Assembly: GCA_964199315.1 (NCBI GenBank)
Contig: OZ116702.1
Location: 33,852,001 to 33,916,000, forward strand
DNA length: 64,000 bases
Direction: 5' to 3'
From: Orbicella franksi
Taxonomy: Eukaryota
In this document: piece after piece, positions 3,564 to 61,974 of the stretch
How positions within the stretch are numbered: position 1 is the first letter of the stretch
Layout: each line of letters opens with the position of its first letter
Program-made: the position numbers and the translations under genes
The notes under the pieces: generated by a model
Told to the model about the DNA's origin: nothing
The model's database searches: none
What the model saw: the letters and a program-made list of their open reading frames with translations, nothing else

Positions 3564-3620
3564 AACAAACAAACAAACAAACAAGCAAACAAGCAAACAA
3601 GCAAACAAACAAACAAACAA
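3564..3620. repeat. (AAAC)n-like microsatellite
   Basis: Direct reading: AAAC/AAGC tandem units. Confidence 0.9.
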
Positions 3621-30700: not shown

Positions 30701-33700
30701 CTGTCATAATATAATTATTATTTTAGATGTCCTTTGCAGTCCGAGGAGGGTCAAACTCATTATGACTCCATTAAGGGTATGTTACATAATTTCTATTTTC
30801 NNNNNNNNNNNNNNNNNNNNNNNNNNNNNNNNNNNNNNNNNNNNNNNNNNNNNNNNNNNNNNNNNNNNNNNNNNNNNNNNNNNNNNNNNNNNNNNNNNNN
30901 NNNNNNNNNNNNNNNNNNNNNNNNNNNNNNNNNNNNNNNNNNNNNNNNNNNNNNNNNNNNNNNNNNNNNNNNNNNNNNNNNNNNNNNNNNNNNNNNNNNN
31001 ACATTTATTTGGAGACTCTAGGTATCCTGAGAGTTGAAGCACAAAATTGAATTCAATATTATGACATTTGTGTGTCATTTCAGAACCTTGCAGTCAAAGA
31101 GAGGAATGAGTCAGTTGAAGCAGCAAGACTTTCTGCTTGGTGGCATTTTGTCTGTTTGTTAGGCTCCAGAGTTCAAGAGCTATTTGATCAGGTATTATTT
31201 GTCACTACATGTAGTAACTGTCAGTTGCGGCAATTTTTTTTTCAATTGCGGCAATTGATACCACTACCGTCATCATAATAGTATTGTCAGTGTAGTCACT
31301 ATTATCATCATCGTTATCATGGATGTCAAAAACCCTATTATTGTATATTTTCCAAGGCTGCTGCCTAACGGGCGCCCAGTCGCCTGAGGCGCCTAACTTA
31401 CGAGTGCGGGCGACTAAAGTTTTGTTCAAGGAGCCCGAGTGGGTGCCTAAACATGGAGTTTTGTTTCCCATGTAATATGTCCAATGACTTCAATCTTCTC
31501 ATGAAATTGGTCAAAAAATCGTTCACACAATAAATTAAATGGAAAACAACAGCTACTCTGGTCCTGTTTTGCTTTTATCAAGAGAAATCTGGGCAAAAGC
31601 ACGGCAACAAAGTCTCTGTCCGCTCACGAAACAGCCAAAAACAGCCATGTTTGAAAATTGCCCTATAATGCATTGCAAGCTCAGTATTGAATAACTGTAC
31701 ATCATGTATGCCAATGGATTGTGTCTGTTGATGCCTTACTGATTCCAAGTTGCAAATTAACTACTTTGATAGCAAATATTTTTGGAATTGGAGTGATGAT
31801 CCTGCTGACATTATATTTACAGTTGAAAAAAGATAAATGTGTCTAAATATTTGTCTGATACTTCAGAAAACTTCACTTAGATGTACTGAATGAATTTCTT
31901 TAGGTTCTGAAAGGATAATTCAAGTAACTAGCCACCAAAAAGAACACATCATTGCAATTCTCTTTGCATACTAGGGTTCTATATTTTAAATTATCAAATC
32001 AATTGTCGCGACTCCACCCAATATACAAGAATTTATTTTCTCCAAAGAAGTGGCCAATATTGCTGTAATGTTGCCTCAAAATCACCTTTAGTTTATACTA
32101 ATGTCCCAAGCCCGGGGAAGGAACACACATTTCAGTGAGGCCAAATTCAACCCCCCCCCCCCCCCAAAAAGCCTCTTTCATTTTTGTTTGTTTTCATTTG
32201 TGGCTTGCATTTCATGATTTGTACAACATATTTTGTCTTTTTAAAATAGAATTGCAAAACTCAAAAACAAAAGCAGCAATATAAATGTTTATAAAAAAAA
32301 GCTGCAGCACCTGCATTGATACACCAATAATTGAGTTTGACCAGAAATAGTATTCTTTCTCAGTCATGACCTGATCACTTTGCTAAATGCTTTATTTATA
32401 AAATTTGATTGATATTAGACCATATTAGTGTCTCATGGAAAATCTCTGCCCCAGGACCCCTCCCCAAAATTTACACAATTAACTCCCCGCCATCTTCCTC
32501 AACCTCCTCAACCTCCCCCCCCCCCCCCCCCCCAGATTGACCATGGAGAATTTTACTTGGGCTCCTAAAAAAGTGGCTTGGGCTCCTAACTTTTGGTGGA
32601 AGAAGCCCAAAGGGTTCCTTAAAAATTTCCTTAGGCAACAGCCTTGTTTTCCATATCCACTGGTGAAGATACATGTATTGATGACAACATTTCCTGTCTT
32701 TTCGTAGTTGTTAGTGCAAACAGTCAGTTTGGTCAGTTTGTCTATGTATAAAAGAAAATAACACAGTGGCTTGAAAACACGAACATGATTTTCTTATGTA
32801 AAAAAAAAGAAAAATTGACCACTTGAAAATAAAATTCATATCTTCATGCCACTGTGTAATATCCTGTAGTTATCTTTGTTGTGGTCATCATTTTGATAAT
32901 TTATAACTGCCATCATCACCATAATCATTAATTAGTATTGCACTTGAGAAATTAACCTTGAGGCAAACGACACTGAAGTTGGATTTCATCTCGCAATAAT
33001 ATTGTTGTATCCACATAATTTCTTTTTTCCACTATTTTGTAAATTCCAGGTTTGTACCCCACTGCTTCAGTTTATATTTGGAGTAGCCATTGATCAAGTT
33101 AGCTTACTGAAGACCAAAGAAGGACTTGGTGATCTCAAATGTCCTCCAACACCAACGAACAGCAAACTCTTGGCAGACATGATGGCAGAAACACCCAAAT
33201 CAACCATCCGTAGATCTCTCAAGGAAATGGGTACCCCTAGAACTCCTACTGTGTTAAATGCAAGCTTTGCCAAAACAGCTAAACAGAAACTCCTTGCACA
33301 AGGATGTGAAATATTGCTAGAATTGCTTATGACAGATGACCAGGAGATCAATGGAAACTCGAGTTTAATAGTCACACTAGGTAAGAGATTTCTCTGTTAC
33401 TGTTGGACATTCATGGAAAAATTTGACTGTTTCTTTTTTTTAATTTCTCCTTTCGGTAAAACTGATCGACTTATAACTTATAACTCATATCCTAGCTGAA
33501 AGACTGCAGACAGTGATTTTCAAGAGACCAGAAGATTTTAAGAGATATGCTTGCTTATTGACAAATGCTATAAGAGAAGGATTCAGAGCTCTGAGTACTG
33601 ACCTTGCAGGTAAGAAACAGGATAATAGTTACCTGTACATGCAAGTCACAGCATAGCCAACACCATAAGAGTGTGATGCCACAGCATCCCCAACAGGTAT

Positions 33701-39700: not shown

Positions 39701-42700
39701 ACATACATAGAAGAGTTTAGAAAGCTAAAACCAAAAAAAAAAGCTTGAAAATCACCGAATGTTTTCGACTGTTGAGTCATCAAGGAGAATATAAAGAAGA
39801 TGAATCAGTAGTCGAAAACGATTGGCGTTTTTTGAAACTTGTTTTAGGTTCAGTCTGTTAAATTGTCAGATAAAAATAGAGAAAGTTGACTAGGATTTTG
39901 AACTGTGAAGGAACGTGAACTTATAAATTAACCCTAATTTACATGTTTCTGTTTACCGTGTGATAACTGATTCTCGTGTCTTGTTTCCTATTGCAGTGTT
40001 GTTCCTGCATTGTATAACGCGCTCGACCAATCACAAGACTGCACTCAGTTTTCTCAGTTCACTCTGACGTCACAAGGAGAAGTCACGTGAGTTTTCACGG
40101 TTTTTTTTATGTGTAAACTACTGTCATCTGTCCTTGCTAGTTAACCACGATTTTTTTTCTTTTCACAGCCCGGACGCGACACCAACCAGTACCCCTGGTG
40201 AGTTCTTTGTCAAGTCACTTCAAAGACAACGTTGATTTTTAAAAGAAGTGTCTTTATTTCATTTCGTAAACACATTCTCACGCGTAGCCTTCTCAGAAAG
40301 CGGAAAATCTAGAAAACTAAGCATAAATTATGCAGCTTATTTTATACAATATATCTTAACATTCCTCTTCATAACCGTTGCCGAGTTTAATAAATCGTTA
40401 TTTCATGTTCGTTAAATGAACGAGAAATTATCTGTTTAGTAACTTGTTTATTTCCTGTTGATATCTGCTCCTTTCAGTGGAACTGGTGTCATTCAAATTA
40501 GTTTTATGTTTGCTTTCTCATTGTTATTTTAGAAGAAGAAAAGGATCTCTCCCTGGTACGAAACAACAATGGCGACGAGTTAACGTTGAAGAACAAGAAA
40601 GAGCTTGAGGCTGACCCAGTTTCGTCAGGTGTAGAGAAGAGTGAAGTTAAAGATAGCAACGAAACAACAAAGAAGACAGTTAAAGAACTTAAAACTGTAG
40701 ACAGTGAAAAGGAAGTTGAGGAGGTGATGGAGTACGGTGCTGGCGAAATATCGCATGACGAAAGTGAAGACGATGCTGAAGAAAAAGTAAACGCTGCTAC
40801 CAATAAAACAGCAGAAACGGTTGAAGATGTAACCACAATTGAGAAAGAAATGCAGTGCGGTGATGACGAATGCGAAGTGACGTCACCTGACGTCATACCT
40901 TCGTCACAGACGCCAAGTTTTGAGTCTCCGTTCCAGTCCCTTAGACGAGTGATGATTCCGCTCGAGGCCATTTTGCCCAGTTCATTGGAAACAATGAGAA
41001 ACAAAGGGAATTCAGAAAGAAAGCAACTTGAAAAAACGGAAGGGATTAAAGAAGATGAAGCAGTGCTGGAAACAAAGATGGATGTATTAGAGACAAATGA
41101 GGTTGACGAATTGTCATCTGTGAAACCAGAGGAACCACCCGCTACTAAAATGAAGGTGTCCCCAATCGCCAGGCGAACAAGGAGAAGATTGCAACGGAAA
41201 ACCAACGTCGAAAAGAACCCTTCCCGCGAGGAACCCGAAGACGAACCCGGAGAACAAGAGGTCAGCGAACTTATGCACAAAGATCCTGAAAAGTCAAATG
41301 AACCAACCGTCACAATGAAACCCGCTGAACTAACTATCGCGGGCGTAACCAGAGATGCAACGTCGTCTCCAGTCCTCAGCGCCAAGAACAAGTTTCTGCG
41401 TCCGTTTGCAGCAGGTGGAAGTCCTTGTCGTGTGACATTACGCGGGAGAAATTCACCATGCGTTTCACCGACAACTGGAATTTTAAAGAAGTGGCCTGGT
41501 AGTAAGCAGGCAATTGACTCGCCCTCTCCTCCTGGAAAGGTATTTTTGCCGTTCTTGATTTAGAAAATCAAAAGTTCATTGCACGATTTGCAAAGAATCA
41601 ATGCATGAGCTCATTAGCGCTTTTGCCACCCAGAAATTTTACAGTTTTTGAAAGCCTTGAATAATATACCCAAAGATCCAAGAATTTCAACTATCACTAA
41701 GTTTCACAAGCTCTTTAAATTCGTACCTAGCATGATTCTTTCTCAGCTGCGCAAAGTGGTGTGTCAACTTAAACCATAACTGAAGCAACGATCGCTCCAT
41801 GTCGTCATCTCTATGGCAGTTGGTTCATGAACATTGGTTTTCTTTTCAGGTGCGGAGAGTGTCGTTTGCTCTTCCTGAAAAAGATGGCAGTTCTGAAGAG
41901 TCACAAGAAAAGTCCTTAGAAACAAATACCACTGCTTTTCAATTGAAGACGTCCAGCTCTTCTCCTTTTACGGCTATTAAGCAGGTATAAAAAATCAAAT
42001 AATTACACTGCTAGGTCTTCTAACCGAGCTAGTGAAAACCAGTCTTAAGCCACGTTAGTTTTAATTCCGGGAGCTGATGGGCGAAATAAAGTCTTTGTGG
42101 TCCGGAGAGTAAGATGTTTGACACTGAAGGAAGTTTGTTTTTCCCTTTACATTTCAGCGGCGACCTGTGCCTGTAAGCAGTGACCTTTGTACTCAAGACC
42201 TGACTGACTGTATGTTCCCGGATCTTGTGTCTTGCACTGCACCAGTTGAACAGATACTTCCTTCCATTCTCACCATGTCCTGGTCACGTGGTATGGGTCA
42301 CTTGGTACGCGCGCAGAATATTCACACCATTGGAAGCTTGTCAGCTCTCAAAGAGGAACAGGTAACTAGGGGCGATGGGATGTTTGGTGACTTTTGTCTA
42401 GGGCCAATTCTTCAATTAAAACAGGTTTTCGTTGAAAATATTGTGTTTATTCATTAAAGCAATTGTTTCCAAACGCAATAACAGATAGACGCTGATATCT
42501 AGTTTATAAAATTCAACAAAAGATCCTTTCATGAGACGGGCTTTAGTCGTTTTAGTTTCAGTAGGAAGGCTCATTGCGTGTCGCGAATATTTAGTCACGA
42601 AATTTCAAATCGCCACAGTATTTTAACCGTTTTGGTAAATATACACCTCATGATACACAAACCTTTCTAGTTGTGAAAATACTAATAATTTGTTTTAAAA

Positions 42701-44047
42701 AAACTGTTGTTTTTTAGGTGAGGAATTTGCCCATTAAATCGCCCAAGGTACCAACTCTGAAGAAGGCCTTAAGAAGATTTCACCAAAGTCAAAGAGGCAG
42801 AAATTCAAAACCACTCGCTGCGAAACTAACGGCGGAAGCTTCGCTGAAAGAGGAGAATAAAAATATAGAAGGTACGGTTGGTCATGTGACCTTTCCAATC
42901 AAAAGAAGAAAGTTAGCACTGAAATGGGTTGCCGGAAATAAAAAGAACGGGACCATTTTAGAAATCAATTTCGCCGTGTGTTCCAAAACTAGTTACAGAA
43001 TGACATCATTTCTCGATAATTTCCGTAACGTTTCTGTAACTGACCGTAAAATTTTGGGTACGCTCTTTCTCGTTTTACTTCAATGTCGCCGAACCTTACT
43101 CCTTTCTCGACCTGAGTGTAATTTGTCCTCCAAAAAAAGGTTTCAAATTTGAGTGTGAATTGCTGACCCGCTTGCTTTCTTTTATCACAGAGATTGATGC
43201 CTCTTCTGAGCGTGCCCAGCTCCCAAGCGAGGCCCACGTGGTGATGGAGCCAATCAGCATGAAGGATTCTGTTGGAGATAACCTGGAAGCGACATCCACG
43301 GGTGAAGAGTGCTTAGAGACAGCCGAGGAGTTGAGGGGTGAAGAAACTGGGTCTACTGACGAGTGCGACTCGAATGAACCCGACATTGAAAGCGTCGTTG
43401 ATGACGAGAAAGTGGGGTGCAACAAGGCCTTAGAGTCAAATGAACCCGAGATTATCACTATCACAGAGGGGGTGAATGTTTCTGGTGACGCCATGTGGGG
43501 CAGTAGTGAGGGAGGATCAGCGGACCATGTGAATGAACGCTCGGGCGATGAGGAGTCAGCCAGTCAAAACCGTACTACGCATGACTCCGACGCTATGGAA
43601 ACATCCGCTGACATCGCCACCCCACAGCGTGAAACTTGCGCCCAGCCGACTAAATTATTCTCATGCGAGAAATCGGTCGAGCAGAGTGCGAGAATTGATG
43701 AAACGTCGACTCACGAAGAGGATTTATCAGGAGAGGTCAATGACAAATCCAAGCAAAACGAACTTACTGAATCAACGAAGGCGGCCCAAGTTACTAGTGA
43801 AGAATCTGCTACGCTCCCCTCGACTGCAGGCACCGAAAGTAATTTAGCTGTCGAAGAAGAAGGCTGCAGGGAAAAGGAGAAATTCTGTGACTGTTTACGT
43901 TCCCTAAAGGATCTTGCGTTACCTGACGTCTTGCGTGATTTGTCCAGTGAGGAGATTTTCGAAGCGCATCACAACCTGACGGAAATTATGTCAGAGGTTG
44001 TCCAAGCTTTGAGGGGCCGCTGGCAATCTCCGAGATCCAAGAAATAA
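24885..44047 (+). CDS. RIF1: Telomere-associated / replication-timing protein RIF1, 39 coding exons, about 1955 aa
   Basis: Phase-consistent exons: 24885-24994, 25423-25498, 26390-26475, 26798-26835, 27932-28035, 28475-28566, 28704-28797, 29187-29285, 29458-29550, 29813-29866, 30421-30505, 30727-30776, 31084-31191, 33050-33380, 33496-33609, 33841-33903, 34009-34103, 34312-34469, 34891-34995, 35122-35197, 35586-35690, 35852-36001, 36175-36405, 37064-37224, 37577-37637, 37718-37813, 37961-38067, 38153-38210, 38407-38439, 38678-38854, 39276-39377, 39528-39607, 39997-40086, 40169-40197, 40533-41539, 41850-41984, 42158-42361, 42718-42871, 43191-44047. Hallmarks: QVDAYL, AWNILIDNFALSP, TNDVNQGDALEHDFS, AEANICCEEL, FWNATF, LTEHQKE, PP1 motifs GILK...VRRVSF, MFPDLVSC, LPIKSPKV and C-terminal RGRWQSP. 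Confidence 0.95.
25819..26042. mobile_element. 224-bp hAT-like MITE in RIF1 intron 2
   Basis: TIR CAGGGCTCGAAAAAA / TTTTTTGAGCTCTG. The flanking 8-mers GATTTGAG and GACTGGAG match at 6 of 8 positions (possible decayed 8-bp TSD). Confidence 0.65.
27684..27714. repeat. (ATT)n microsatellite (another at 61546-61585)
   Basis: Direct reading. Confidence 0.9.
30801..31000. other. Assembly gap (200 N) inside RIF1 intron 12
   Basis: Run of N. The flanking exons join in frame (…LIMTPLR|NLAVKERNES…) and are collinear with vertebrate RIF1, so no coding exon appears to be missing. Confidence 0.95.
31353..32646. mobile_element. About 1.3-kb non-autonomous TIR element in RIF1 intron 13
   Basis: TIR CAAGGCTGCTGCCTAA / TTAGGCAACAGCCTTG. 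Subterminal GG(C/T)(G/T)CCTAA motifs occur at both ends, and TTTTC flanks both sides. No transposase ORF. Confidence 0.7.
38895..39251. mobile_element. hAT-like MITE in RIF1 intron 30
   Basis: TIR CAGGGGTGCCACAG / CTGTGGCAACCATG with repeated internal TCAGGGAAA motifs. No clear TSD. Confidence 0.65.
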
Positions 44048-46882: not shown

Positions 46883-47843
46883 GTAACGTTTTTTTAAAAA
46901 AAAAAAAAAAACCTTGAACAAGAAAATTGACAGGCGAAGCTTCTAATTATTACGCCAGAAATTGTTTAATCAATAACCGGCTAATTCCACAATTGACATG
47001 TGTTTAGCTTGAAACCTGACCTAGTATCTAAACAATAAACTGTTAGTGAGCTTATCTTAAAAAATTTAACGCGCATTTTTAGTGATAAACTCGTCCGTAA
47101 TCTGTCTCTATAGGTCTCAATCTTAATCACCTTTGTTTCTTTGCTATTTTTCAGCTTACTTAACTGTAATTTAAAGATTACCTTAACTTTTCTCTAATTG
47201 TGTTGCATCGCAAAAGTGTCTTTAAAATATCTCAAGGCATATCTCATCGATTCTCACGTGATAAGGACGGAAGTTCGCGAAAGGACTAAAATTAGTGCCA
47301 GTCTCCGAAATTTACATGAGCGTGCGGTAGTTGCTAGCGTGGTTGCTATGTGCCAGAACCTCAAAAGAGAGTTTAAAAATACGTGTGGCAGTCTCTTGTC
47401 TCTATAATTTATTTAAGAACAACCAATTATCAAATTGCATATTTGAATATAATAACAAACGAAATTAACCAGTTGCAGTTTGTTCCATTGGAAAACAACA
47501 ACATCAACAATTTATTTAAATATAAGTTAAGTGGATGTCGAGCAGATGCCATTATCTTGTATCATTGAGCTTCATTGAGAGAGCGTCCAGAAAGTTTCCT
47601 TTAAATTGCTCATTTCCTCTTGTAAACTGTGTATTTAACTCAGTTTGAAGTTTGCACAGTTTCAGTATTTTTTTGCAGAAAACCAGCAGCAAACACTATT
47701 TCCCTTACTTCATTGATTCCCTCTGACTAGTTTTAAGGGAGACGAGGGTGCATTTTGATTTCAAAGTTCACGATTTAAAAGGAAGGGACTCTAATCGACG
47801 AAATACAGTATTTACCTGTTGGTGTTGATTTAGTTTGTTTCAG

Positions 47844-50800
47844 ATGTGGTCTCTCGTGTTTTAATGATTTGTGGGTCCCTCATGGCAATAGCTAATGGGC
47901 TGATTCCATCTCTGGGAGCCATGATCTACGGCAAGATGACGGATGAGCTTGTTATCCATGAAAACTACAGCTGTACGCTTAACGAGAGTATTACTTCTGT
48001 TAGATTAAGAAACCTGGTGACACTGGAGATGATTCATCCCCGGTTAGAAGGAATAAACGTTACGGAAACAAAATCGCTTGAAGTTACGGTAAACGAAACT
48101 GGAATACAGGTGAAAGTTGTCGGCTTGAACGGTGAGCTGCTAAACCAAACAGTTTTCGAGGGAAGGAACTCAACTCGTTATAATACAACATCAGTGTTTC
48201 TTAACGGGACAACTCTGAACGGAACAGAATTAACTGGAATTGAGGTAAACGGGACTCGTGTTGACACGGTGAAGTCAAAGGAGAGAATTTCTGTAAAGCA
48301 AAAAGATAGCATAGGTCCTGTTCAGAGTATTAAAATGTTACCTGTGACACCAACATCCAAAGTTCTGCCCGAAACAAATAATGTAAATTACACGCTGCGA
48401 AACATCACGGAAAACTGCCGCTTATCTCAAAACAGAATTGAGGAAAAGATGAGCAAATATGCCCTTTATTATGTGTATGCGGCCATTGGAACATTGCTTT
48501 TTGCGCTCGGACAGAATGTGATGTGGAACATTGCTTCAGAGAGGGCAGTTAAAAACTTGAGCGAAAATTTAACAGATGCAATGCTGGACAAAGATCCCGG
48601 ATTTTACGACACCAAGATACATGAGGGTGTGGTTAACTTGGAAAGTATTACGTAAGTATGACAAAAAAATTGTTGGTGAATAGAAACATGTTGCTTTGCT
48701 ACGAACAAATAAAGTAAACATTTCAATAGACAAAACGAAGCAAATAAATAAATAAATAAATAAATAAAAATAGCATTTGTGCATCAATCGGGACAAAAAG
48801 AAAAATAGAACTTCTTGCAGCCCCGTGAGAGATTTGAACTCTCGACCCCTGGTTTACAAGACCAGTGCTCTAACCACTGAGCTAACGAGGCTGGTACACT
48901 GGCCGTTGTCGTTTATTTTTATTGTTTTTAACGTACCTGTTTTTACGCGTCTGTGCAGTATTTTTTAACGCGCAAATATAAGACTCATCACATACTTGAG
49001 TGAGAACATAGGATAAATGTGTAATATGTGATAGTTCCCCTGGAAATGAACCAAAAGTTCAAAGTCTCATCCCAGAGAAGAAAAGTTTTAGGTGTAGTAA
49101 GATGTTATTGTCTCTGTGAGCCATGGTACACATCCAACAAGGTGGACAACTTTTTACGGCTTTTTACGGCTTGCAGTGTGACCTGAAATAAACTACTTCT
49201 ATCATTTTTTCGTACAATGATTTGAGACCCTTAATTTTAATTTTAGTTACACAGATAAAACTGTTAAAAGTTATGTGTAATAGCATGTCAGCCTCGTTAG
49301 CTCAGTGGATAGAGCACTGGTCTTGTAAACCAGGGGTCGAGAGTTCAATTCTCTCACGGGGCTTTTGCATTTTTTTGTAATTGTTTTTCTGCTTGATGCG
49401 AACTCCAATTCTCAGTTATACATCCTTAAATTGTATGTTATACATTTTATAGAGAATTTGTTGGTCCTTTTTTATTATAAATATCTACCTGTCTAATGGT
49501 GTAATGATCACCATTATCTGTTCTACCAAATCAAAACGTCTTTTTTTGTGTGTCAGAGATCCTCGAGAAGCTATCAGCCAACACGACCTCGACGCGCTGA
49601 GCGGGGGCCTGGGCGGAGAGATAGCGTACTTGATACAGAGTGTATCAAATGTGATGTCTGGATTTCTTGTCAGCTTCATTGAAAACTGGAAAATCACGCT
49701 ACTAATGATGGCTGCTGGGCCTGTCCTAGCGGTTGTTCAAGGTATCGCGCACAAGGTAAAGGTACAGCAGTTTTATCGTCTTTTAGAAATTAAGCAGGAT
49801 AAAAAACAACAACAACAACAACAACAACAAAAAACAAAAAAAACAAAAAACAAAAAAACATTGCAATCCCGTGAGAGATTTGAACTCTCGACCCCTGGTT
49901 TACGACCCCTGGTACGATGACATTCTGGTCGTACCTGCACGTGTAAATTAAAATTAATGATATGATGCCTCTGATCACTAAAGCTGTTTAGTGATTCTGC
50001 GCTCTTTCTAGCTTCACTTGCTCTAAAGCGACTGCGGAAAAAGTAAAGGTATACGTTTTTTCATCCATTTTACAGCGTTCAGGTGGTTCTCGCCACTATT
50101 TGTTGTAAACGTCATAGCCTCCAGGGCCGGAATGTTCGAAAGCCGGTTAACGCTAACCTAGGATAAAAAGTTAATCGAAGTATTCATTTTTCTTGTGTAA
50201 AAATGTTTTTCATTGCTTATGTTTTGTGTAGTTTGTGATTTTTCAAACTCAAACCTGAAGGGCAAACAATATAAACAGAAAACAGCACCCAAAAGTTACA
50301 AAACTCAAATAAAAATTTTCTCTAATCTAGGGTTAGCTTAATCGGGCTTTGAACAACCCGGCCAGTTGCTTCCCGCCATTTTTTCTTACCTACGTCATAG
50401 CTTCCAGTTGTTTCCCGGCTTTTTTTCTTGAGTGCGTCATAGTTTCTAGTTTCTCAGCTTTACGTGGTCCATACGTTACGTCTTCGCCACAATTTGCTGC
50501 GTAAGATACACTTTCTAGTTTTTGTTTCTAACTGACTAAGATTAAAATAATTCTGCATTGCCTTATGAGGATATTGATGATAAATCATGTGCGAACTCGC
50601 CTAAATATACCATGATGTGCAAACAAAATTACGAGTGCAACTGAAATTGACAACACTGGGAGCAACATACTCTATGTTACATGTAAACTCCTTCTCTATG
50701 CATATAATTATTTTTTACAGTTTGAACAAACATTTACACAAAAAAATCTCTTGACTTCTCAAATGGTGTATATTCTTCTGTGATTGTTGTCAGGTGCATG

Positions 50801-53800
50801 GCTTGTCAAGCAGCTCCTAAACGTGTACAATATTAACAAACAAACAACAACAAAACTTTATTCCTTTTTCATTAATTTACAGCCATGAATTTTACGTTAA
50901 TGATTTGTCTTACATCTACACTTTGTTGTAATATTCTTGTTAGGTTGAAAAATTTGTTATGAAACAAAAAGAGGAGTTGAAAAAGCGAGCCAGTGCAATG
51001 GCAAAAAAGAGCCTGGGATCGATAAAAACCGTGGCGTCATATGCTGGAGAGAAAATTGAGAAAGCACGGTAAGTCAGAAGTTTTCTTTTCACTTTGCTTA
51101 ATTCGCTTTAATAACAGTAACTTTGATCAGACCTCTTTCATCAACAGATACGCTAGCAAGATAGAGGCGAGCAACAATCTAAACAAACTAAGGAGCCTTG
51201 TTCTTGGCATACAGAGTGGAATCTCTACTGTCGTCACCTTCGGCTTCCTTGGTTTGGGCTTTTGGTGAGTTAACGTACATTTTATCTCCAGTAAAGGTTA
51301 AGGTTTGTTTCAACGCCAGTTTGGACCTTTGCTGTTCTTGATATCCAATCAGAAACTATCACGGGAAGTCGTTCACAACTCCTGAGGACAATCTAGGGGC
51401 ATCTCTGAAAATCTTGCTGAACCACTAAGGAACTTTTAAATTCTTCTCTGTTATCTTTATGATTGCGGTTACTCAGACTACAGAAATTCCTGACGAAAAA
51501 ATTACCCTCAACCAATTCTCTGAGACTTGTTTTCATCTAGACTGGCAGTTCATTATACGAAGTCGCTAATCAGTTCAGAGGTGAAAATAGCATGAAGTAA
51601 ATGAGTAAATGCATGAATGAGTGAAAGAATAAGAGATATATCTGAGAATTGGAGTTCGCATCAAGCACAAAAAAAAGAGAAAATACAAAAATTGCAGCAG
51701 CCCCGTGAGAGATTTGAACTCTCGACCCCTGGTTTACAAGACCAGTGCTCTAACCACTGAGCTAACGAGGCTGCCATGCCACATCAGTTAACTTTTAATA
51801 ATGTTGTTCTGTAACTATGTTTCACAGTTCAATTCTCTAATGTTTATGTGTTAGATACTAACGGAATCTCCGCTAAAATCTCATCTAGGTACAGTTCCAC
51901 TCTATTACCAGGAGGAAATGTGACTCCAGGAGCTTTGATGACGGTCAGTTCCTTTGCATGTTTGTTTTCTCTTTCGTTTGCTACTTTTGTTTTTTCGCTT
52001 ATTCAAGTTTTAATGATGAAGTACACATAGTATACCTCAAGTACTCTTTTTTCGCTGATTATTATACGCCAGACGTTGTTTTATCTCCCTAATTATATTG
52101 CGAAGTCATTTTAAATTCGACGGATTTTTTCCGAAATATTGCGTGGAAACGATGTTTTCGGTTAAGTCTGTGTTCTGGTAAAGTGACGCAACAGGTTGGC
52201 GGTTATTTCCTGTATCTCTACTCCCTCTTGGATGGGTGCTAGTCCATAAGAGGGTTACTTACGTTATACCCTGTATTAAATTCGCCGGTACCCATCTGTA
52301 CACCTGGGTGGAGAGAGGCACTTGTGTGTGAAAATGTCTTGCCCAAGAACAAAACAAAATATCCCCGGCCAGGGCGATGTCTTGAAGTGTTTAATGCGCA
52401 CTGCGGTCCTTATATTTCTGTTGACTTGTCCCTTTTGTTCAATAAAGATATTTATGGCGATCATTTCTGGAGTGATGCAAATGGCAGGAACCGGAGAGCA
52501 AGCGGAAGACGTCGGTGACGCCAGAACAGCGCTTTCATCTCTGCTCGGAGTCTCAGAGTCGGTAAGATCTTTTGTTTTATGGTATATTTTTTGATTCGAA
52601 ATGCTACTCTCCTGAGCGTTGTGCGGCAACCCGAAAACAGCAATGATGGAGCCAAAGATGCAACAGAGGCAACAAAGATATACATTTTTTTTCTCGTAGG
52701 CTGATGAAGACCCATTTGACAAGGCTACCAGTCAACTTGACACAGTGTTTGGTAAACTGGATGTTTTCAATGTTTACTTCCATTATCCCTCCCGACCCGA
52801 ATATCAGGTATGATGTTTAGACGCACAGTGGCACGTTTGGCTGCTTCACTTTACTTCCTATTGTTCAACTAAATGTTAAAGTTCGTCCTAATTTTGGTCT
52901 GTAATGAGGAACTTAAATATTGTAGTTTTTCTAGACAAGAAAACACTCATAAGAATTAAATCAATTTTGTTCTTATTTAGGCGAACTTTGAATAGAGAAT
53001 AATTCAGTCCTCTTTGTCTTTTTAACGAAATCAATACGTTGTATGTTTTCCATCTCACAGGTGTTGAAGTCGATTAACTTCACGGTAGAAGAAGGTCAGA
53101 CGATTGCCTTGTTGGGTGACAAGGGTAGCGGGAAAAGTGCACTTATAAAATTGCTGCAGAGAATTTATGATCCACAGACTGGGAAAGTAAGACTGTAAAA
53201 CTATAATGTATTCTCAACGGCTCTCTGCACGCATTGCATGCCTATGTCACGAGTTCACAAAAAAAGACTAAATTTCTCCTGACTTCAACCTTTCTTCCAT
53301 GCGGTGGCCTGATGCATCATTCCTATTTAATTTTCTCAGGGTATCGTGAATTTCTTTATTTTAAAGCACACGTACTTATGTTTGTCTTTATTTTTGACAC
53401 AAAGGTGAGGCTCGATGGACAAGACTTACGTTTCCTTGACCAGCGCTGGTTTCGTCAACAAACTGGGATAGTACACAAGAAACCCGAGTTCTTCAACACT
53501 TCAATAGCAGATAACATTGCATACGGAAAGGGTGACGCGACTTTTAAGGAAATAGTGCGTGCCGCAAAGGCTGCTGGGGCGCACGAGTTCATCACAGCAT
53601 TTCCAAAAGTAAGTTACAGTAGGAATTTTTGAATATTTTTACAGCAATCAACCAGCAGTGGAAATTCCTTTTTCTACGAGGCCTTACGACCTGCAGGGTA
53701 AATAACTTATATGGGTTGAAACTAAATATCTTGAAGGCTGTCTGTTTCATTGTCATGAAATAACGAAGTCGCAAATTTGAGGTGTAAATCTATAAGTATC

Positions 53801-56800
53801 TCCTACACTTTAGGGATACGCTACCGTGCTTTACGACGACGGATCGCCGCTGACATCCTACCAGAAACATTTGCTAGCGCTGGCGCGGGCAATGATCAGA
53901 AAGCCCCGGATACTGCTGTGGGAGGAAGACCTGTCAATCATGGACAACTCTGCTTTAAATGCTCTTACGAACTACTTAGATCAGGTGCGTGTCAATAAAA
54001 AAAAACGCTTTTATGACGGTGTAACCTTGAGAAGGCGATTTTACCTTTTGCTAAAGGATAATCGTAAGCTAAATACACTGATTAATCAATGCAAAGTTTT
54101 AAACTGCATCTGCTCCGTAACCATATTGTGTTTCAGGCTCGCCGAGGTCGCACCACAGTCATTTCAACTAGTCACGTGTCAGTAGCTCGTATTGCTGACG
54201 TCATTATTGTTCTTCACAATGGTGAAATAATTGAACAGGGGAGTCCTGAGGAACTGATGTTATCAGGAAGGGCATTCAGATACTTAGCTACACTTCAAGT
54301 GAGTTAAACCTGATTTCAAATAAGTAAGACTACGTCTATTCGTTCTTGACCTTGGGTTGGTTTAAATAGCAATAATTTTCGTCACATGATCTGAAACTTA
54401 AAGCAGCGAGCTCACACTTTGCCGATGAAGACTTCGAGAGCAGGCCACGTGCTTCGTTTACTTTGAATTTTAGACCCTGTGGGGAGAATTGTTTCATTTC
54501 AAATGATTTCTGGTTTTCTGCCGCCTTGGCAGGTGCCAACGTCTTCAGCGCTATCTAGTTAATTGTGGGAATTGCGGTGGCCTCTTGGTAAGCGTGCTGG
54601 ACGTCGGACGAGGTGATCCCAGTTTAAGCCCTTGCATGAACAAGGTTTATAAATAGAAAGCGACGAATTAGATGTTGGAGATCACTCTGTGGTGGTCTAG
54701 CATGCCATCCAAGGGGACTGGAAACTGTTAGCTGCTTCATGCTACTGAGACCTGAGATAAGAGCCGACCGGATGAGCCATTAAGTTCAAGAACAGACTTC
54801 ACCTACCTGCCGTTTCCTCACAGAAAGAGTTTATAATCGCTTGTTTTGTTTTTGTTTCAGTATTTTGAGTCTCAGACTGTACACCAAGAGAGGTTAATGA
54901 AAACTGGTGAGATTGACGGCTAGTATTGTACACTATAAATTTCTTAAAACAAAGTACTTTTAAGATCTTTATTGAAATTATTTGCTTTAATTCAGTTTCA
55001 GTCTTATTAGAGCCACCGCCGGTCAAAGACGGCATCGAAGAACTGGAGGCTAGTTTAAATCAGAGTCAGGAACAGACTAAAGAGCAAGTAAAAGGTTTCA
55101 TATCAAAAATCCGTCAGATAATCCAAGACAAGGTGACAAAAGCATTCAGCAATTGCTTGTTACTTGAACTAACACGACCATGAAGCATCATATGCATATA
55201 GTTAAATTTCGAAAAGGGTGGAAGAAATCAATTACATAACGCATAAGACTACTCTTCAGTGAGAGTACGATGGCCTCATGGTTAGTGCGCGCGACTCCGG
55301 CTCGAGTGGACCGGGTTCGGGGACATTGTGTTATGTTCTTGGGCAAGACACTTTACTCTCACAGTGCCTCTCTCCACCCAAGTGTATAAATGGGTACCGG
55401 CGAATTTCACTAACATTCCATACACGGGGGAGTAGAGAAATTCCTAGTCGCTTCACGCCACGGAAACCGGGATATGCTCCGGCCTAATGGGCCACTTGGC
55501 TCGTATGCAGACTTAACTTACAGTGAGAGTGTTGGGTTTGCAAGCTTATCGGTAATTTGACATAATATATACTTACGGATAGTGGGAATACCTTCGGCCG
55601 TATATATTTTTGTGGCGCTTTCCTTAGCCTCAATCAATGCTTTTTCAGGCATGACTAGCGGCAGCTGTCTGAAAACATTTCTCTGATAATCAGATATTCA
55701 TGGAATGGCTAGGAGGGAAATGTAGTTAGCATGAAAATGGTGTTGTGATACAATTTGTCCAGACATAACGTTTTAGTTACTTTTAAAAGTATTTCAAGGG
55801 ATTTTTGAAACATTTAATTGATTTCAGTTGAATGACGGAAAGTCCGCATACAACATGATAAGGATGCAGCTTCAGGACTTACCATTGTTGTTAACAGGAG
55901 CTCTGGGAGCTGCTATCACTGGAATGGTCGCCCCAGGTCTCTCTTTTCTTTTCGGCGAAATACAAAAGGTAACAACATTTATCAATTAAATTACATAAAT
56001 GGGGCTTTTCGCTCCGTGTACAGAAGAGTTTTCATTGCTATAAGAAAAACATACTTCTGTAACGCAAGGACCAGTTCTTGCAAGTGTTTTCGTTAATAAC
56101 TAAGCGGGGAAGGTTGACGAAAATAAATTCATCCTCAGAATAAAACATGACTGTTACTTGGTTGCCATAATTAATAAATATGTCCTGAAGAGTCAACATC
56201 GTATGAGTTCATGATTCACAAGTTATTCCCCGAACATCTTTCTCAGGTTTCAGTCCGCTAGGAAGGTTAATCGTAGAGTTTATTCCTTGCGCAAAACGAC
56301 AGTAAAGTAGGTTTCTTTTCTTCTTCACTACTGCTTCACAAAAGGTAGTAACTATATGGAATGTTTGTCTTCTTAGTTTATGAATGATCCTCTGAGGGTT
56401 GCACGTGAAGGGCCATTCTGGGCAAGCATGTTTGTTGTGTTAGGAGCCGTAGTTGGATTTGGTGGCACCATTGAGGTAAGAATTTATTTCCTCAGTGGAA
56501 TGCCCAGATGCATGCTGCGAGCCATCGTTTGTGTTTGCGACTGTATACTCAGCCGACTTTATGATCTCCATACTTAATGCGATCGATCTTCTAGAAATAT
56601 GGAGTCTATCGCCAGTTCATTTATAGGATATGTCTTGTTTTTGAATGCTATAGGTGATTTAGGCTAAAAAAATAGATGTGGATATTTATTATATTTTAGA
56701 AATTTATGCTCAGTTTCGCCACTGAGAAGTTGAGAACAAGACTGCAAAAAATGGCCTTTGATACATCAATAAACAAGGTTAGTGTCATTTTATTTCAATT

Positions 56801-59800
56801 GTCTTCATGGACAGATCTCATTAAAAGTTTAACTGATAAATTATATTGCGTTCAATCAGAACTCAGTTCCTCAAATTCCAGGGATAGGCGACTCACTTAC
56901 CGTATTCCCTGGAGCCGGAGGACAATTTCCTGGTGTACCTCACTCGATGAGGATGGGACTACCCACTGTTCCTGGTGCACCCACCGCGCAGTTACCATCC
57001 ATAGGTAATGCCCCTTCTCAAATGTTCCCTGCAGGAGTCACAGGGCTACCATCTGAACAAATACCAGCTTCTGGTCTGCACGCAGTTGGAAATTTAACAC
57101 CGCATTTGCCATCTGAAATTCCATCTTCTCCAGGATTTCCTAAAATGGTCTCAACAGGGTTACCAGAAATTGGAGCCATTTCCGCTGCACCTCAAACACC
57201 AGGCTTTCCCTCGGGTAGCTTTTCAGCAGGGATATCTACACCGGGATTAGCGCAACATGGTTTACCATCAAACATGGAAACGGCACAAGGCCTTCCCAGA
57301 ATGCCAACTAGTTTAACTCCATTGAACCTAGCAGGAACAGGGCAGATGTCATTGCCGGGATTTGCTGCCGGTCAAGTCCCATCTAATAGCGGATCTTTAT
57401 CTTTGGGATTACCCTCTAATTCAGAAACTACTCCAGGAATGACAGGGATATCTGTTGCTGGTCTACCTTCGGGTGTACCGTCAGTCCCTGGTCTGCCACA
57501 AATACCCGGTAGCGTTCCCACCGGAATCACCCCATCAGGTTTGAGAGCTGGAATAAGCCTTCCTAGTCTTCCAACACAGTCTAGTCAATCTGGAATAGCA
57601 GTATTTAGATTGAACCCTGGTCAATTACCAACTGGAACTCATGATTCATCATTTGGGGAAAGCGGAGGCAGTATGCCCCAGATTCCCGGACTGGGAACCA
57701 GAGTTCCTCTAGCAGTTCCTGAAATCAATTCTGGTATGTCACCACAGGTTTTAGGAATGCCTACAGATATAACATCAGCTGCGAGAATGGTGCCCCCTTC
57801 CACAGCGATAGATTTTCCTGGTACAGCTGGCCTTGGAATGGGAGGTTATGGGGCGGTGATTCCTGACCCACAAGTAAATTCTGGTACGTTGCCACCAGGG
57901 TCATCAGAGGTTGCAGGAATGCCTACAGATTTAACTCCAGCTGCTGGAATGGTGCCAACTTCCACGTCGATAGGTTTTTCCGGTAGGGCAATGATACCTG
58001 GCTCACAAGTTAATTTTGGTATGGTACCACAAGACGGATTATTTCCCAGCTCCACTGCAATACCGACTGGAGCACAACGCTTGGGTGATACCGTGATTCC
58101 TACCAATCCATATGCAGGATCAGTTGATGAAGTGGGAGTTACAAAGCTGCAGGAAATGGGACTCCCGACAAATATGCCGAACCAGGACCTTTTGGTAAGA
58201 ATAGATCTATGCGAATCGACACTGTAAAGCGATAAACTAAGTGTTGACGAGTTCTGGCTGCAAAAATCCTTGTGAATATAACTAAGGAAAAACCCTCAAT
58301 TATTCTTCTTCTTGCAAGTCACGTTGGATAGCAAGCGATTGTATTGAAGACTCCAACCTCGCTTTAAGATTTGATATCTTTGGTTTGATATGGCTTTTTT
58401 GTCTCAGGACTCTTTTAGGATTCTGAAATTGAACGCATATAGAAACAATTTTATGATTTTGAACTAAGAAGTTTTGCTTTACTTAAGGTTTTACCAGATC
58501 CACAAAAACAGGCGGACCTACTCATGAGCCAAGTTGAAAAGGATGTAGAAGCAGCTTTGCAAAACGTGAGTAGTGTTTATTTCCAGATTCGCTTTGTAGC
58601 TGGCTTATTCGTATATATCATAGCTCTCTCATCCTGTATGGAAATTGAACCTAACTCATTTTAGCATTAGAAGAATTGTTTTTAAGAGATAACTGATGTG
58701 CGCACGTTTTAAACGATTCTACTCCCTCAGTTTGCTTTTTCCTTACCAATCAGTCCATAGGCAAATATCTTGGCACCAGGGTCCAGGAGACCTTTTCGTC
58801 CGTATCCACACTTGGTATGGCTTTATACAATGGGTGGAAGATGACACTTGTCGTGTTAGCTGGACTTCCAGTCATTGGGCTGGCTAATCGTATTCAGCAG
58901 AATGAAGCCGATGCTACTGTTGAATCAGAAGGAGTTGAAGAAGTGAGTGTTTAATACATGTAACATGTAACAGTGTAGCCATCGCTAACGCGTCACACGA
59001 CGCTTTTTCGAATTAGTAGAGAGAATCGTCATTACAACAAATCGGTTCTGCCGTTTTGAAATTGTAATTTAATATTAATACAATTCTTTTCTGTTCATGC
59101 TAAGACACTTACCCTGTTCTAATTACACATTAAATTTTTGAGAGGCAAAAAGGTTAAGATAAGAGGTGATGTCCAAGAAAAAAATTATTCGGCTATTAAT
59201 AGATCGGCCAGCTTAAAAGCAATCATATTTTGGCTCTTTTTAGAAACAGCAGTTCTGTTAATGACCTTTACTACATTAATTATAGCTTCTCAAAACAAGC
59301 TTCAAGAAAATGGAAACAATTTCAGCCCTTGGAATGGAAAACAAGTTCGTCAAGAAGTATAAGGATGCTATCTTCGAAAAATACAAGTAAGAATTTATAT
59401 TTGTTTTATAATTAATTTCTACGTTAAATCTGGGAAAGCAACCACGTTTTTAGCAGATCTTATACTTAATGTATTATACATTTGTTATGCTCTTTTTTAC
59501 AGGCATGCGTTGAAGAAAGTCATCGCCAGTGGTTTTGCCTTCGCTGTTGGACAAGCTATGGTGTTTTTCATTTACGCAGGCGCACTGAGGTTCGGTTGCT
59601 ACCTTATCAGCATAGGAGATATGGCAGCTATTGAAGTCTTGGGGTAGGCAGCAGATTTCGTTTCCACTGTAGTTTGCCATTATGCATCCATTGCAGGAAA
59701 AAGAATCCTTCTTTGAAATTGAAATACAGTCGTACTTCCTATAATTAATGGTCCTAGTCAGGAAACCAATTGTGAAAAGAGAAGCTTTGTTGCAGACGGA

Positions 59801-61545
59801 CGCAAAGTGGACCAGGGTATCTAGCATTCAGCAACATTGAAGCCGGCCCATACCCAGTCGGTCGTATTAACGGAATATATTTGAATTATTACAGTAACCT
59901 AATCTTTCTTTAAAATGATGTCATTATGATTGATCCCAATCGATTCAAAACACAACTGACACACGATGTCCGCTGTCCCAACTGGTGATCGTTAGTTGTA
60001 TATTATGGGGTATTTTGGACGTAGTCGTGTTAACCGAGGTTTTCAGAAAATTGACTAAGCCGTCTTCGGGTCAAAAAAGAAATAACCGTAACGCAAGGTT
60101 CTCCGATTTACAAAGAAATAATTTAGTAGGCTTACAGCATAATTTATTTTCTTGTTTCAGTGTGTTAATGACAGTGTTGTTCGGTTCTTATGCTACGGCC
60201 AACTCGCGAGCACCGCCGCACGCGCATGAAGACACCGAAGAATCGCTGAACAGATTGTTCGAGTACGAGGCAGCAAACGTGGAAGATCACATAGGTGATA
60301 AGATGGTGAGCGACAATCTCCTCCTGGCTCTGTTCCACCAGCAGTAAAAGAAAAATTAATTACATTTAGAATTATTTTATGGCAACGTACACGATTAAAC
60401 GGAGCTCAGGGTCATCTCGAACTTGTTTTGAAGCCCTCATTGCACACAGTGGTAAACGTAAAATGGACGTGGAAACAAATAACAACTTAGTGACCCAGAT
60501 TCCTGCAAAAGTAGTTAGTTTTGTTGGATAACATTGCCATGTATCTCTCTCGGTCGATTTTCCTGCAGCCGGGCAATAAGAAAATTCCTAATATGAATAC
60601 GTCTCTAAATATTTGAAGTCACCATGTTGTAATTTATTTCTCAAAGGACGAAGTCGAAGGAAGCTTGGAATTTAAACATGTGGAACTGCCAGACCCTCTA
60701 CACAATGGCGCTCCATTGTTGAGCCAGTTAAACGTGAAGGTCAGCAGTGGACAAACATTAGCCATTGTACCGCTGGACAACGAAAAAATCAATCCATTTG
60801 AACTTTTGTTGGAACGTTTCTTTGATCCTTTCAAGGGTGCATTGGTAAGTAATGTAATTTCATTTTGCTTCAGGTTTTGAAAAAATAAAACCTGTTTATG
60901 AAACGCTAAAATTTGAACGCATATAACTTTGCATCACATTTCAGTTCTTGGATGGTGTGGACATACGCAGTTTGGAACTTTCTTGGTTGCGATCCCGGCA
61001 TGCAGTGGTGTCCCATCGCTCGTTTCTTCCACATTGTAGTATTGCCGAGAACATCGCTTATGGTGACAACAGCAGAGAAATAACGAGGCGCGAGATTGAA
61101 GACGCCGCGTACTCAGCTTATGCACATGAATTTATAACGGATCTAACAAAGGTGAGAAACTGGACCTTTGCTGCGGTCATAAAGGCTCTGCTACAATCTT
61201 AGGCAGTTTGCTGAAGCATTCAGGAATATTATTCCAGGGATATTTATGCTTTTGAATGTTTGTTTCAGGGCTATGACACAGTCCCCAATGAAGATCAAAT
61301 CCAGTTGACCGACAGTCAGAAACTCAGGATCGCTACAGCACGGGCTATTATCCGTGGACCAGCAATCGTTGTGATTGACGAGTTGGAACAGGAAGATCAG
61401 GTGAGTCTGTCAGTCAGTCGGTCAGCCGGATGGTCAGTCAATCATGTCGGTCAGTGAGTCAGTGAGTCAGTTGGTCCGACAATCAGTCAGACGGAAATTC
61501 ATAGATGTAGTGATCCATGCTATGCAGTGATTCATATAAATGAAC

Positions 61546-61587
<42 letters not shown>

Positions 61588-61974
61588 ATGTTGACCTTAA
61601 GATTCGTGCCGCCATTGATTGATTACGCTACTTTTACACAATTTAATACGATAGCAAGTTCTGTTGTATGACAGACTCTAGATGTTGCCGGCTAATATTG
61701 ACGGGGTAACTCAACATTAAAAATATGGACGTACACTATTTTATGAAATTAACTGTTTTTTTGTCCGCAGGCTGTAAATGACGCCATACACATCCTTTCT
61801 CGGAACAGAACTTGTCTTATACTCACTCGACGGCGACAAACAGTTGAAGCAGCTGACCAGATAGTTCTCATGTATCGCGGACGTGTTATTGAACAGGGAA
61901 CTCTTGATGAACTTCTGGAACAAGGACGCCTGTATCACTTGTTAACGAATTTAGAAGACGTGGAGGACCTTTAG
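47844..61974 (+). CDS. Highly divergent full-length ABCB (P-glycoprotein/MDR-like) protein with two degenerate NBDs and two large insertions, at least 26 exons, about 1800 aa
   Basis: Phase-consistent GT-AG exons: 47844(or 47834)-48651, 49557-49755, 50944-51068, 51148-51264, 51889-51943, 52448-52561, 52700-52807, 53061-53186, 53405-53608, 53814-53984, 54137-54298, 54861-54906, 55011(or 55002)-55132, 55828-55968, 56377-56475, 56700-56777, 56860-58194, 58488-58565, 58754-58942, 59286-59386, 59503-59643, 60161-60305, 60647-60844, 60945-61151, 61269-61400, 61771-61974 (TAG). TMD1-NBD1-TMD2-NBD2 landmarks: AIANGLIP…YGKMTD, ENWKITLLM, SIKTVASYAGE, FHYPSRPE, SIADNIAYG, GWKMTLVVL, GALRFGCYLI, LLERFFDP, SIAENIAYGDNSR. 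No stops or frameshifts. Confidence 0.88.
48819..48891 (-). tRNA. trnT-TGT: tRNA-Thr(UGU)
   Basis: The reverse complement is GCCTCGTTAGCTCAGTGGTTAGAGCACTGGTCTTGTAAACCAGGGGTCGAGAGTTCAAATCTCTCACGGGGCT: a full cloverleaf with anticodon TGT, A and B boxes, and a downstream T-run terminator. Confidence 0.95.
49291..49363 (+). tRNA. trnT-TGT: tRNA-Thr(UGU)
   Basis: GCCTCGTTAGCTCAGTGGATAGAGCACTGGTCTTGTAAACCAGGGGTCGAGAGTTCAATTCTCTCACGGGGCT followed by T-runs. It differs from the other two copies at two loop positions. Confidence 0.93.
49868..49903 (-). pseudogene. Truncated tRNA-Thr(UGU) 3' half
   Basis: CCCGTGAGAGATTTGAACTCTCGACCCCTGGTTTAC is followed by a duplicated GACCCCTGGT instead of the 5' half. 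Confidence 0.85.
50125..50362. mobile_element. MITE (PIF/Harbinger-like) inserted in a 42-bp tandem repeat
   Basis: TIRs GGCCGGAATGTTCGAAAGCCGGTTAACGCTAACC / GGTTAGCTTAATCGGGCTTTGAACAACCCGGC, with (C)AG on both flanks. Confidence 0.8.
51699..51771 (-). tRNA. trnT-TGT: tRNA-Thr(UGU)
   Basis: Identical to the 48819-48891 copy, with a downstream T-run terminator. Confidence 0.95.
52203..52373 (-). mobile_element. tRNA-derived SINE fragment
   Basis: The reverse complement contains GTTCTTGGGCAAGACA…GTGCCTCTCTCCACCCAGGTGTACAGATGGGTACCGGCGAATTT, the same family as 55267-55520. Confidence 0.75.
54566..54808 (+). mobile_element. Diverged tRNA-derived SINE
   Basis: 5' head GCGGTGGCCTCTTGGTAAGCGTGCTGGAC. 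The 3' tail GCTTCATGCTACTGAGACCTGAGATAAG…CAGACTTCACCTACCT matches the family tail. Confidence 0.65.
55267..55520 (+). mobile_element. tRNA-derived SINE with a CORE-like central motif and a 10-bp TSD
   Basis: Head TGGCCTCATGGTTAGTGCGCGCGACTCCGG…GGGTTCG. Central TTCTTGGGCAAGACACTTTACTCTC resembles the MIR/CORE motif. Tail CAGACTTAACTTA. The direct repeat CAGTGAGAGT occurs at 55257-55266 and 55521-55530. Confidence 0.85.

Follow-up and report, generated by a model that had tools for sequence, protein, structure and literature searches.

What can a nucleotide-binding domain still do when most of the motifs by which it hydrolyses ATP have been replaced? The question is raised by a gene for an ATP-binding cassette (ABC) transporter of the ABCB type, found on the plus strand of a 64,000-nucleotide stretch of Orbicella franksi DNA (hereafter the window, C5:33852001-33916000 in a genome of 497 Mb), and specifically by its first nucleotide-binding domain (NBD1). 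The altered motifs of this domain are real and nearly invariant in stony corals, fixed in their new state under strong selection. Because the swapped motifs have been preserved under such selection, the domain appears to have been repurposed, rather than to be decaying or mis-sequenced. We consider it probable, with some reserve, that NBD1 is a selected pseudo-ATPase domain, which may bind nucleotide but lacks a normal hydrolysis cycle.

The gene occupies roughly 47.8-62 kb of the window, contains introns, and is predicted from the open reading frames (ORFs) of the window to encode a pair of transmembrane domains (TMDs) and a pair of NBDs, in the order TMD1-NBD1-linker-TMD2-NBD2. These ORFs give the TMD-NBD-TMD-NBD order on one chain that is typical of ABCB full transporters, and Pfam recognises ABC_membrane and ABC_tran domains in the orthologue from Oculina patagonica (P0074). 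The gene is present as a single copy in the genome. NBD1 is encoded by five exons (52700-54298), all in phase 0 and with canonical AG/GT flanks:

52700..52807, plus strand: NBD1 exon A, ending in FHYPSRPEYQ, with the A-loop FHYPSRP at 52778-52798 and its aromatic Tyr retained (AG/GT, phase 0)
53061..53186, plus strand: NBD1 exon B, with Walker A GDKGSGKSA at 53115-53141 (translation, AG/GT, phase 0)
53405..53608, plus strand: NBD1 exon C, with the Q-loop GIVHKKPEFF (IVHKKPE at 53468-53488) (alignment to ABCB1)
53814..53984, plus strand: NBD1 exon D, with the signature LTSYQ at 53850-53864 and the Walker B/D-loop ILLWEEDLSIMD at 53910-53945 (alignment to ABCB1, ABCB4 and Pgp-1)
54137..54298, plus strand: NBD1 exon E, with the H-loop VISTSHVS at 54158-54181 (translation, orthologue alignment)

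A preliminary description of this DNA placed NBD1 at 53061-54298. These are exact exon boundaries (the acceptor of exon B and the donor of exon E), but the A-loop lies outside them, in the preceding exon. The six motif strings quoted in that description are all present in the plus-strand translation, and the alignment with ABCB1 NBD1 that it proposed supports its reading of them, since the register of the window NBD1 against the solved ABCB1 and ABCB4 is free of gaps. The window NBD1 exons match ABCB1 at E values of 2e-30 and 7e-12. In exon C, vHKKp stands opposite vSQEp of ABCB1, the canonical S-Q-E being replaced by H-K-K, while in exon D, aligned with Pgp-1 and ABCB4, LTSYQK stands opposite LSGGQK and ILLWEEDLSIMD opposite ILLLDEATSALD.

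The altered positions were compared with an aligned reference set of 54 canonical ABCB NBD1s, non-redundant and drawn from animals, plants and protists. All 54 are identical at each of them: Q and E of the Q-loop, S, G and G of the signature, L and D of Walker B, A, T, A and L of the D-loop, and A and H of the H-loop. The deviation of the coral domain is therefore extreme, and cannot be put down to noise or chance. As described earlier, the Gln of the Q-loop is replaced by Lys, and the signature reads LTSYQ and not LSGGQ. The Walker B/D-loop is altered less thoroughly than was claimed: in ILLWEE the Asp has become Glu, but the catalytic Glu that follows Walker B is kept (W-E-E), as are the Ser and Asp of the D-loop (SIMD compared to SALD). 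Likewise Ser occupies the position of the switch His, but there is a His one residue further on (S-H compared to H-R). On the other side of the account, the A-loop is intact, as had been stated, with its Tyr retained, and GDKGSGKS (53115-53138) conforms to the Walker A consensus GxxGxGK[ST].

The same states are found in other corals. A word-indexed search using exon D as the query returned 23 ORF fragments from coral-derived assemblies. When these are aligned, no fragment departs from I-L-L-W, the second Glu, D-L-S or M, a single exception is seen at the first Glu and another at the final Asp, and G-S-P-L-T..Q is conserved to at least 90%. Contigs were taken for seven of the 23 fragments, and the NBD1 exons located in them by tblastn, contig L011 carrying exons C-E only; L003 and L011 hold the orthologues that diverge most. 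The exon lengths are identical across these contigs, there are no stops or frameshifts, and the AG/GT sites are intact at every boundary with one exception, the 5' end of L003 exon A, which is uncertain. The A-loop reads FHYPSRPE[YH]Q in the seven orthologue contigs; in the orthologues Walker A reads GDKG[SC]GK[ST]A, the Q-loop GIVHK[KNRE]P[ED]FF, the signature LT[SA][YF]QK, the Walker B/D-loop ILLWEEDLS[IVF]MD and the H-loop V[IV]STSHVS. The minimal determinants of nucleotide binding (A-loop Tyr, GxxGxGK[ST] and an acidic Walker B pair) are present in every orthologue.

Calculated by the Nei-Gojobori method (NG86) across the 257 codons of the NBD1 exons (L011 contributes fewer), dN/dS is 0.05-0.17 for pairs with dS of 0.9-2.2, which implies strong purifying selection on the domain. 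It had been expected that Walker A would be conserved among orthologues while the catalytic residues drifted, and canonical orthologues would have pointed to local sequencing errors. Neither is the case: the orthologues share the altered motifs, and the catalytic positions are fixed.

Three annotated proteins carry the same altered NBD1, namely P0072 of Porites lobata, P0074 of Oculina patagonica, and P0201 of Desmophyllum pertusum (KAJ7390050.1). P0074 is a complete model of 1966 residues whose exon joins are identical to those deduced for the window; P0201 is truncated and has no NBD2. Among stony corals, Porites is a member of the complex clade, and Oculina, Desmophyllum and Orbicella are members of the robust clade, so that the gene would predate the split between the two. 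In a region-restricted protein search, identity falls from 85% (Oculina) directly to 49% or less (canonical ABCBs, including those of corals), and this search returned no forms intermediate between the derived and the canonical NBD1.

Where the domain came from is suggested by two canonical ABCB full-transporter genes on contig C9 (C9:24194000-24204000 and C9:24428000-24447000; L012-L014), which have fully canonical NBD1 motifs. Their NBD1 exons are of 42, 68, 57 and 54 codons, the same as in the window gene. The window NBD1 is 41% identical to that of the canonical paralogue, and identity between any two of the derived orthologues is 73% or higher. Among seven taxa, 133 of the 221 NBD1 positions are invariant, and 58 of these 133 differ from residues common to both canonical paralogues. 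In a maximum-likelihood tree the derived NBD1s form one clade (100/100 support), whose stem amounts to about 1.0 change per site and whose tips measure 0.02-0.17. A long stem followed by short tips indicates a burst of change and then stasis. On the stem branch 47% of otherwise invariant positions changed, giving a background retention of 53%; the Gly, Lys and Ser of the P-loop and the Tyr of the A-loop all survived it.

The two canonical genes on C9 are about 230 kb apart in opposite orientation, and their NBD1s are 90% identical. From their sequences, the pair looks like a recent duplication.

Despite these changes the domain is predicted to keep the ABC-ATPase fold, consisting of a RecA-like and a helical subdomain. 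The analysis was made on the Oculina orthologue P0074, which is approximately 90% identical to the window NBD1 and stands in for the window protein itself. Its NBD1 scores 86.2 bits against Pfam PF00005 ABC_tran (cut-off 25), covering profile positions 1-134 of 137, and aligns without gaps to ABCB1 NBD1 (214 bits, E 1.5e-62). The AlphaFold2 model has a mean predicted local distance difference test score (pLDDT) of 88.5 and a predicted template modelling score (pTM) of 0.86, and Foldseek superimposes it on mouse Pgp with a template modelling (TM) score of 0.88, a root-mean-square deviation of 1.9 Å and a probability of 1.00.

NBD1 was at first considered on its own. An ABC ATP site is however composite, with Walker A, Walker B, Q-loop and H-loop coming from one NBD and the signature from the other, so that the second domain has to be taken into account:

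60617..61971, plus strand: NBD2 of the coral ABCB gene, which completes both composite sites (ORFs of the window, orthologues)

NBD2 also departs from the canonical pattern. Its P-loop is replaced by IVPLDNEKINPFELL in the window, and by IVPLD..NPFELL in all orthologues. The A-loop has Asp in place of Tyr, the Q-loop reads VVSHR (Q to H), and the signature is LTDSQ in the window and L[TS][DEG]SQ-like in orthologues, being non-canonical, mostly acidic and variable. The Walker B/D-loop is IVVIDELEQEDQ, with an acidic D-loop DELE.E.Q, and the H-loop is LTRRRQT (H to R), with a basic TR[RH][RQ]QT in orthologues. These derived states are conserved in orthologues, including P0072 and P0074, in both of which the stretch that takes in NBD1 and NBD2 is longer than 1200 residues. 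Pfam recognises ABC_tran only partially in NBD2 (40.6 bits, profile positions 31-134 only). Site 1 of the transporter consists of the NBD1 pocket (Q to K, H to S) and the NBD2 signature LTDSQ, and site 2 of the P-loop-less NBD2 pocket and the NBD1 signature LTSYQ. Since the P-loop of NBD2 is missing and its Q-loop, signature and H-loop are altered, all in a conserved way, neither composite site is canonical, and the canonical ATP-hydrolysis site of an ABCB full transporter is absent from both. To judge by its motifs, site 2 cannot bind nucleotide in the canonical way, which would leave site 1 as the only possible nucleotide site.

We infer that NBD1 may bind nucleotide but would not carry out normal hydrolysis, in line with the preliminary description. 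This is reasonable because the Q-loop Gln, the switch His and the Ser-Gly-Gly of the signature have gone, while the determinants of binding are kept. The argument from retention should not be pressed, and several observations weigh against this reading of NBD1. Six of eight binding positions are retained, which does not differ significantly from the 53% background (p ~0.19, hand calculation); the pattern thus lends no particular weight to the suggestion of an ATP/ADP sensor site, and support for binding is suggestive. Walker A was called intact, and is so as a consensus, but its third residue is Lys (Ser in 54 of 54 ABCBs) and the residue following GKS is Ala (Thr in 54 of 54), and these two changes could impair nucleotide binding too. 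In the opposite direction, the catalytic Glu is retained, Walker B has undergone a conservative change, from Asp to Glu, and the residue next to the switch position is a His, so that slow or unconventional hydrolysis is conceivable. Finally, RNA and DNA runs that carry a coral-metagenome label contain this DNA, and spliced RNA was not detected. In the Logan contigs of three RNA runs, introns are covered as well as exons, both at low depth, and no contig bridges a splice joint; of the poly-A run that was sampled, not one raw read matched the stretch. The joining of the exons is indicated only by the gene models of three other corals.

Three other explanations need to be weighed against a nucleotide-binding pseudo-ATPase. 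That the gene is a decaying pseudogene, or a canonical P-glycoprotein gene with a local sequencing or assembly error, might be suggested by the simultaneous alteration of many catalytic motifs and by the failure to find spliced RNA in the runs examined. It is scarcely credible, given that the same motifs recur in at least eight independent assemblies and in three annotated proteins, that there are no stops or frameshifts, with all splice sites kept and exon lengths identical, and that dN/dS is 0.05-0.17 with dS near saturation. The shared motifs, intact exons and dN/dS exclude it. Another possibility is that NBD1 continues to act as an ATPase through a remodelled site, in which the catalytic Glu, the Walker B Glu, the neighbouring His (S-H) and the Q-loop Lys support slow hydrolysis at a single site, driving transport or gating. 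In all the orthologues the A-loop Tyr and GK[ST] are present, the Walker B position is acidic and the catalytic Glu remains in place; loss of that Glu, which PMC7544095 describes as the hallmark of a degenerate site, has not occurred. However, this enzyme would have to work with Lys for a Gln that is present in 54 of 54 canonical ABCBs, with Ser at the switch His position, with a variable, L[TS][DEG]SQ-like NBD2 signature to close over the gamma-phosphate, and with no partner site, since the second site has no P-loop. We therefore regard it as quite unlikely.

It is also possible, if unlikely, that NBD1 is a purely structural pseudo-NBD that binds no nucleotide, and that its charged residues (P-loop Lys, Q-loop Lys and the acidic WEED) form salt bridges with NBD2 (DELE.E.Q and TRRRQ), giving a nucleotide-independent assembly of the two domains. 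In both NBDs the charge changes, which complement each other, are conserved, the Ser to Lys and Thr to Ala changes of the P-loop fall at positions invariant in 54 of 54 ABCBs, and NBD2 provides a precedent for a replaced P-loop whose replacement is conserved. Candidate bridges, proposed from charge complementarity, would pair the new Lys residues of NBD1 with the acidic D-loop of NBD2, and the acidic WEED of NBD1 with the basic TRRRQ of NBD2. Against this, the complete GxxGxGK[ST] and the Tyr of the A-loop were preserved along the stem branch, where 47% of the positions that are otherwise invariant were replaced. A prediction of NBD1 and NBD2 with ATP and Mg scored 0.00, which speaks neither for nor against dimerisation.

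On the basis of these comparisons, we propose that the gene arose by duplication from a canonical P-glycoprotein-type (ABCB1-derived) gene, and is present in stony corals of both major clades. Both NBDs would have undergone a burst of substitution at nearly all catalytic-motif positions, and would then have been frozen by purifying selection. NBD1 has kept its phosphate- and adenine-binding elements, namely the A-loop Tyr, the P-loop GxxGxGKS, the acidic Walker B pair with the catalytic Glu, and the Ser and Asp of the D-loop, and has given up the Q-loop Gln, a switch His in the canonical place, and the LSGGQ signature. Its pocket at site 1 is completed by the non-canonical, mostly acidic signature of NBD2, while its own signature faces the P-loop-less pocket of NBD2. 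At most, NBD1 would then bind nucleotide at site 1 as a structural or regulatory ligand, and would be unable to power a normal two-site hydrolysis cycle.

A more far-reaching proposal, which we put forward tentatively, is that since before the split of the two clades stony corals have kept an ABCB scaffold with no catalytic ATP site, with NBD1 serving as a nucleotide sensor or latch, or else salt-bridged to NBD2 in a way that replaces Mg-ATP. What had been a pump would now act as a receptor, a channel regulator or a scaffold, and would be without precedent among known ABC full transporters in functioning with no hydrolytic site.

The remainder of the gene contains both conserved and highly variable parts. 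The first large exon of TMD1 is as follows:

47834..48652, plus strand: first large TMD1 exon, encoding transmembrane segment 1 (TM1), a long N-glycosylated extracellular loop and TM2 (ORFs of the window)

A search with this exon found orthologous single-exon ORFs in many coral-derived contigs, and the exon is thus widespread; the matches are all single-exon ORF fragments and not full-length proteins, on contigs too short to reach NBD1. The extracellular loop (window 47945-48450) is hypervariable among corals in both length and sequence. The ORFs of this exon (P0001-P0010, P0031) have abundant N-x-S/T sequons and vary in length between about 300 and 670 residues, with the flanking TM1 and TM2 conserved. 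Within TMD2 there is a Pro/Gly/Ser-rich exon of very variable size (window 56833-58224), with about 445 codons in the window and 410 in L009 (6990-8222). In L007 (8673-12686; a contig matching Porites lobata) the exon has 1337 codons and is Gly/Val/Ala-rich. It is part of the ABCB gene in the Oculina model, and the Desmophyllum model stops within it.

Some of the surrounding DNA is repetitive. A short element repeated in introns (window 48774-48965, 49787-49948 and 51633-51788, plus frames), which translates as ...NPVRDLNSRPLVYKTSALTTELTRL..., looks like a tRNA-derived short interspersed element (SINE). A second repeat, translating as ...VLGQD.L.SQCLSPP.C.NGYRRI..., is found in the introns flanking NBD1 (window 52243-52600 and 55263-55484). 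In the orthologous contig L003 a Pao/BEL-type retrotransposon ORF of 1851 amino acids with integrase domains (1324-6879) lies immediately upstream of the NBD1 exons, in the region where the TMD1 exons would be expected. In the window, a pair of long open frames on the plus strand (40502-41560 and 43040-44044) lies upstream of the ABCB gene; both have a high content of Glu, Asp, Ser and Lys, and they probably belong, as exons, to a neighbouring gene whose product would be acidic and disordered. Positions 30801-31000 of the window are a run of 200 N, either an assembly gap or a masked stretch.

A literature search found neither a coral ABCB with dead NBDs nor an ABC transporter with two degenerate sites, although this is no proof that they are absent. 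Degeneracy of one site is well known, and to our knowledge degenerate ATP sites in ABC exporters occur only as one of two, with the other site doing the chemistry. A full ABCB in which neither site is canonical, and which is conserved across stony corals, appears to be a new form of this degeneracy. If the interpretation is correct, the coral gene would be a natural experiment on what the ABC scaffold can do without an ATPase cycle, whether it senses ligands, regulates a partner, as SUR does, or serves as channel or receptor. There is also a practical consequence. Because the Desmophyllum pertusum orthologue P0201 is publicly annotated as 'Multidrug resistance protein 1', despite its non-catalytic NBD1 motifs, inventories of the 'chemical defence' ABC pumps of corals would count a protein that probably does not pump.

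The closest known system is ABCB1/P-glycoprotein (MDR1). It has the same domain order, it gives the best sequence match to the whole chain with both NBDs (E ~1e-125, with ABCB1, ABCB4 and ABCB11 as the top PDB hits for P0074), and it is the best fold match (TM score 0.88); the A-loop Tyr and the GxxGxGKS consensus are common to it and the coral NBD1. The canonical paralogues on C9 share identical NBD1 exon lengths and intron positions with the coral gene, at only 41% NBD1 identity. Compared to both, the coral gene replaces the Q-loop Gln, the signature SGG, the Walker B Asp, the D-loop A/T/A/L and the switch His, and with no P-loop in NBD2 it has no canonical ATP site at all.

Fungal PDR pumps such as Pdr5 resemble the coral ABCB in that nearly every catalytic motif of one composite site is off-consensus and the deviations are conserved. 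Pdr5 differs in belonging to the ABCG/PDR subfamily, which has the reverse topology, in keeping one canonical and highly active site, and in that the Lys of its NBD1 Walker A is replaced.

The asymmetric exporters (ABCB11/BSEP, TAP1/2, CFTR, SUR1/2, MRP1, TM287/288 and TmrAB) have, like the coral protein, non-consensus catalytic motifs in NBD1 and a non-consensus signature in NBD2. They keep a fully canonical, hydrolysing second site, whereas the coral second site has no P-loop and faces a degenerate NBD1 signature. The hallmark described in PMC7544095 also separates them, since in the coral NBD1 the catalytic Glu is retained (WEE), and the residues replaced are the Asp of Walker B, the Gln of the Q-loop and the His. 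The degenerate sites of asymmetric ABC exporters bind ATP tightly and have a structural or regulatory role (PMC7756269), and by analogy those of CFTR, SUR, MRP1 and TAP may serve as a model for what nucleotide does at NBD1 of the coral transporter.

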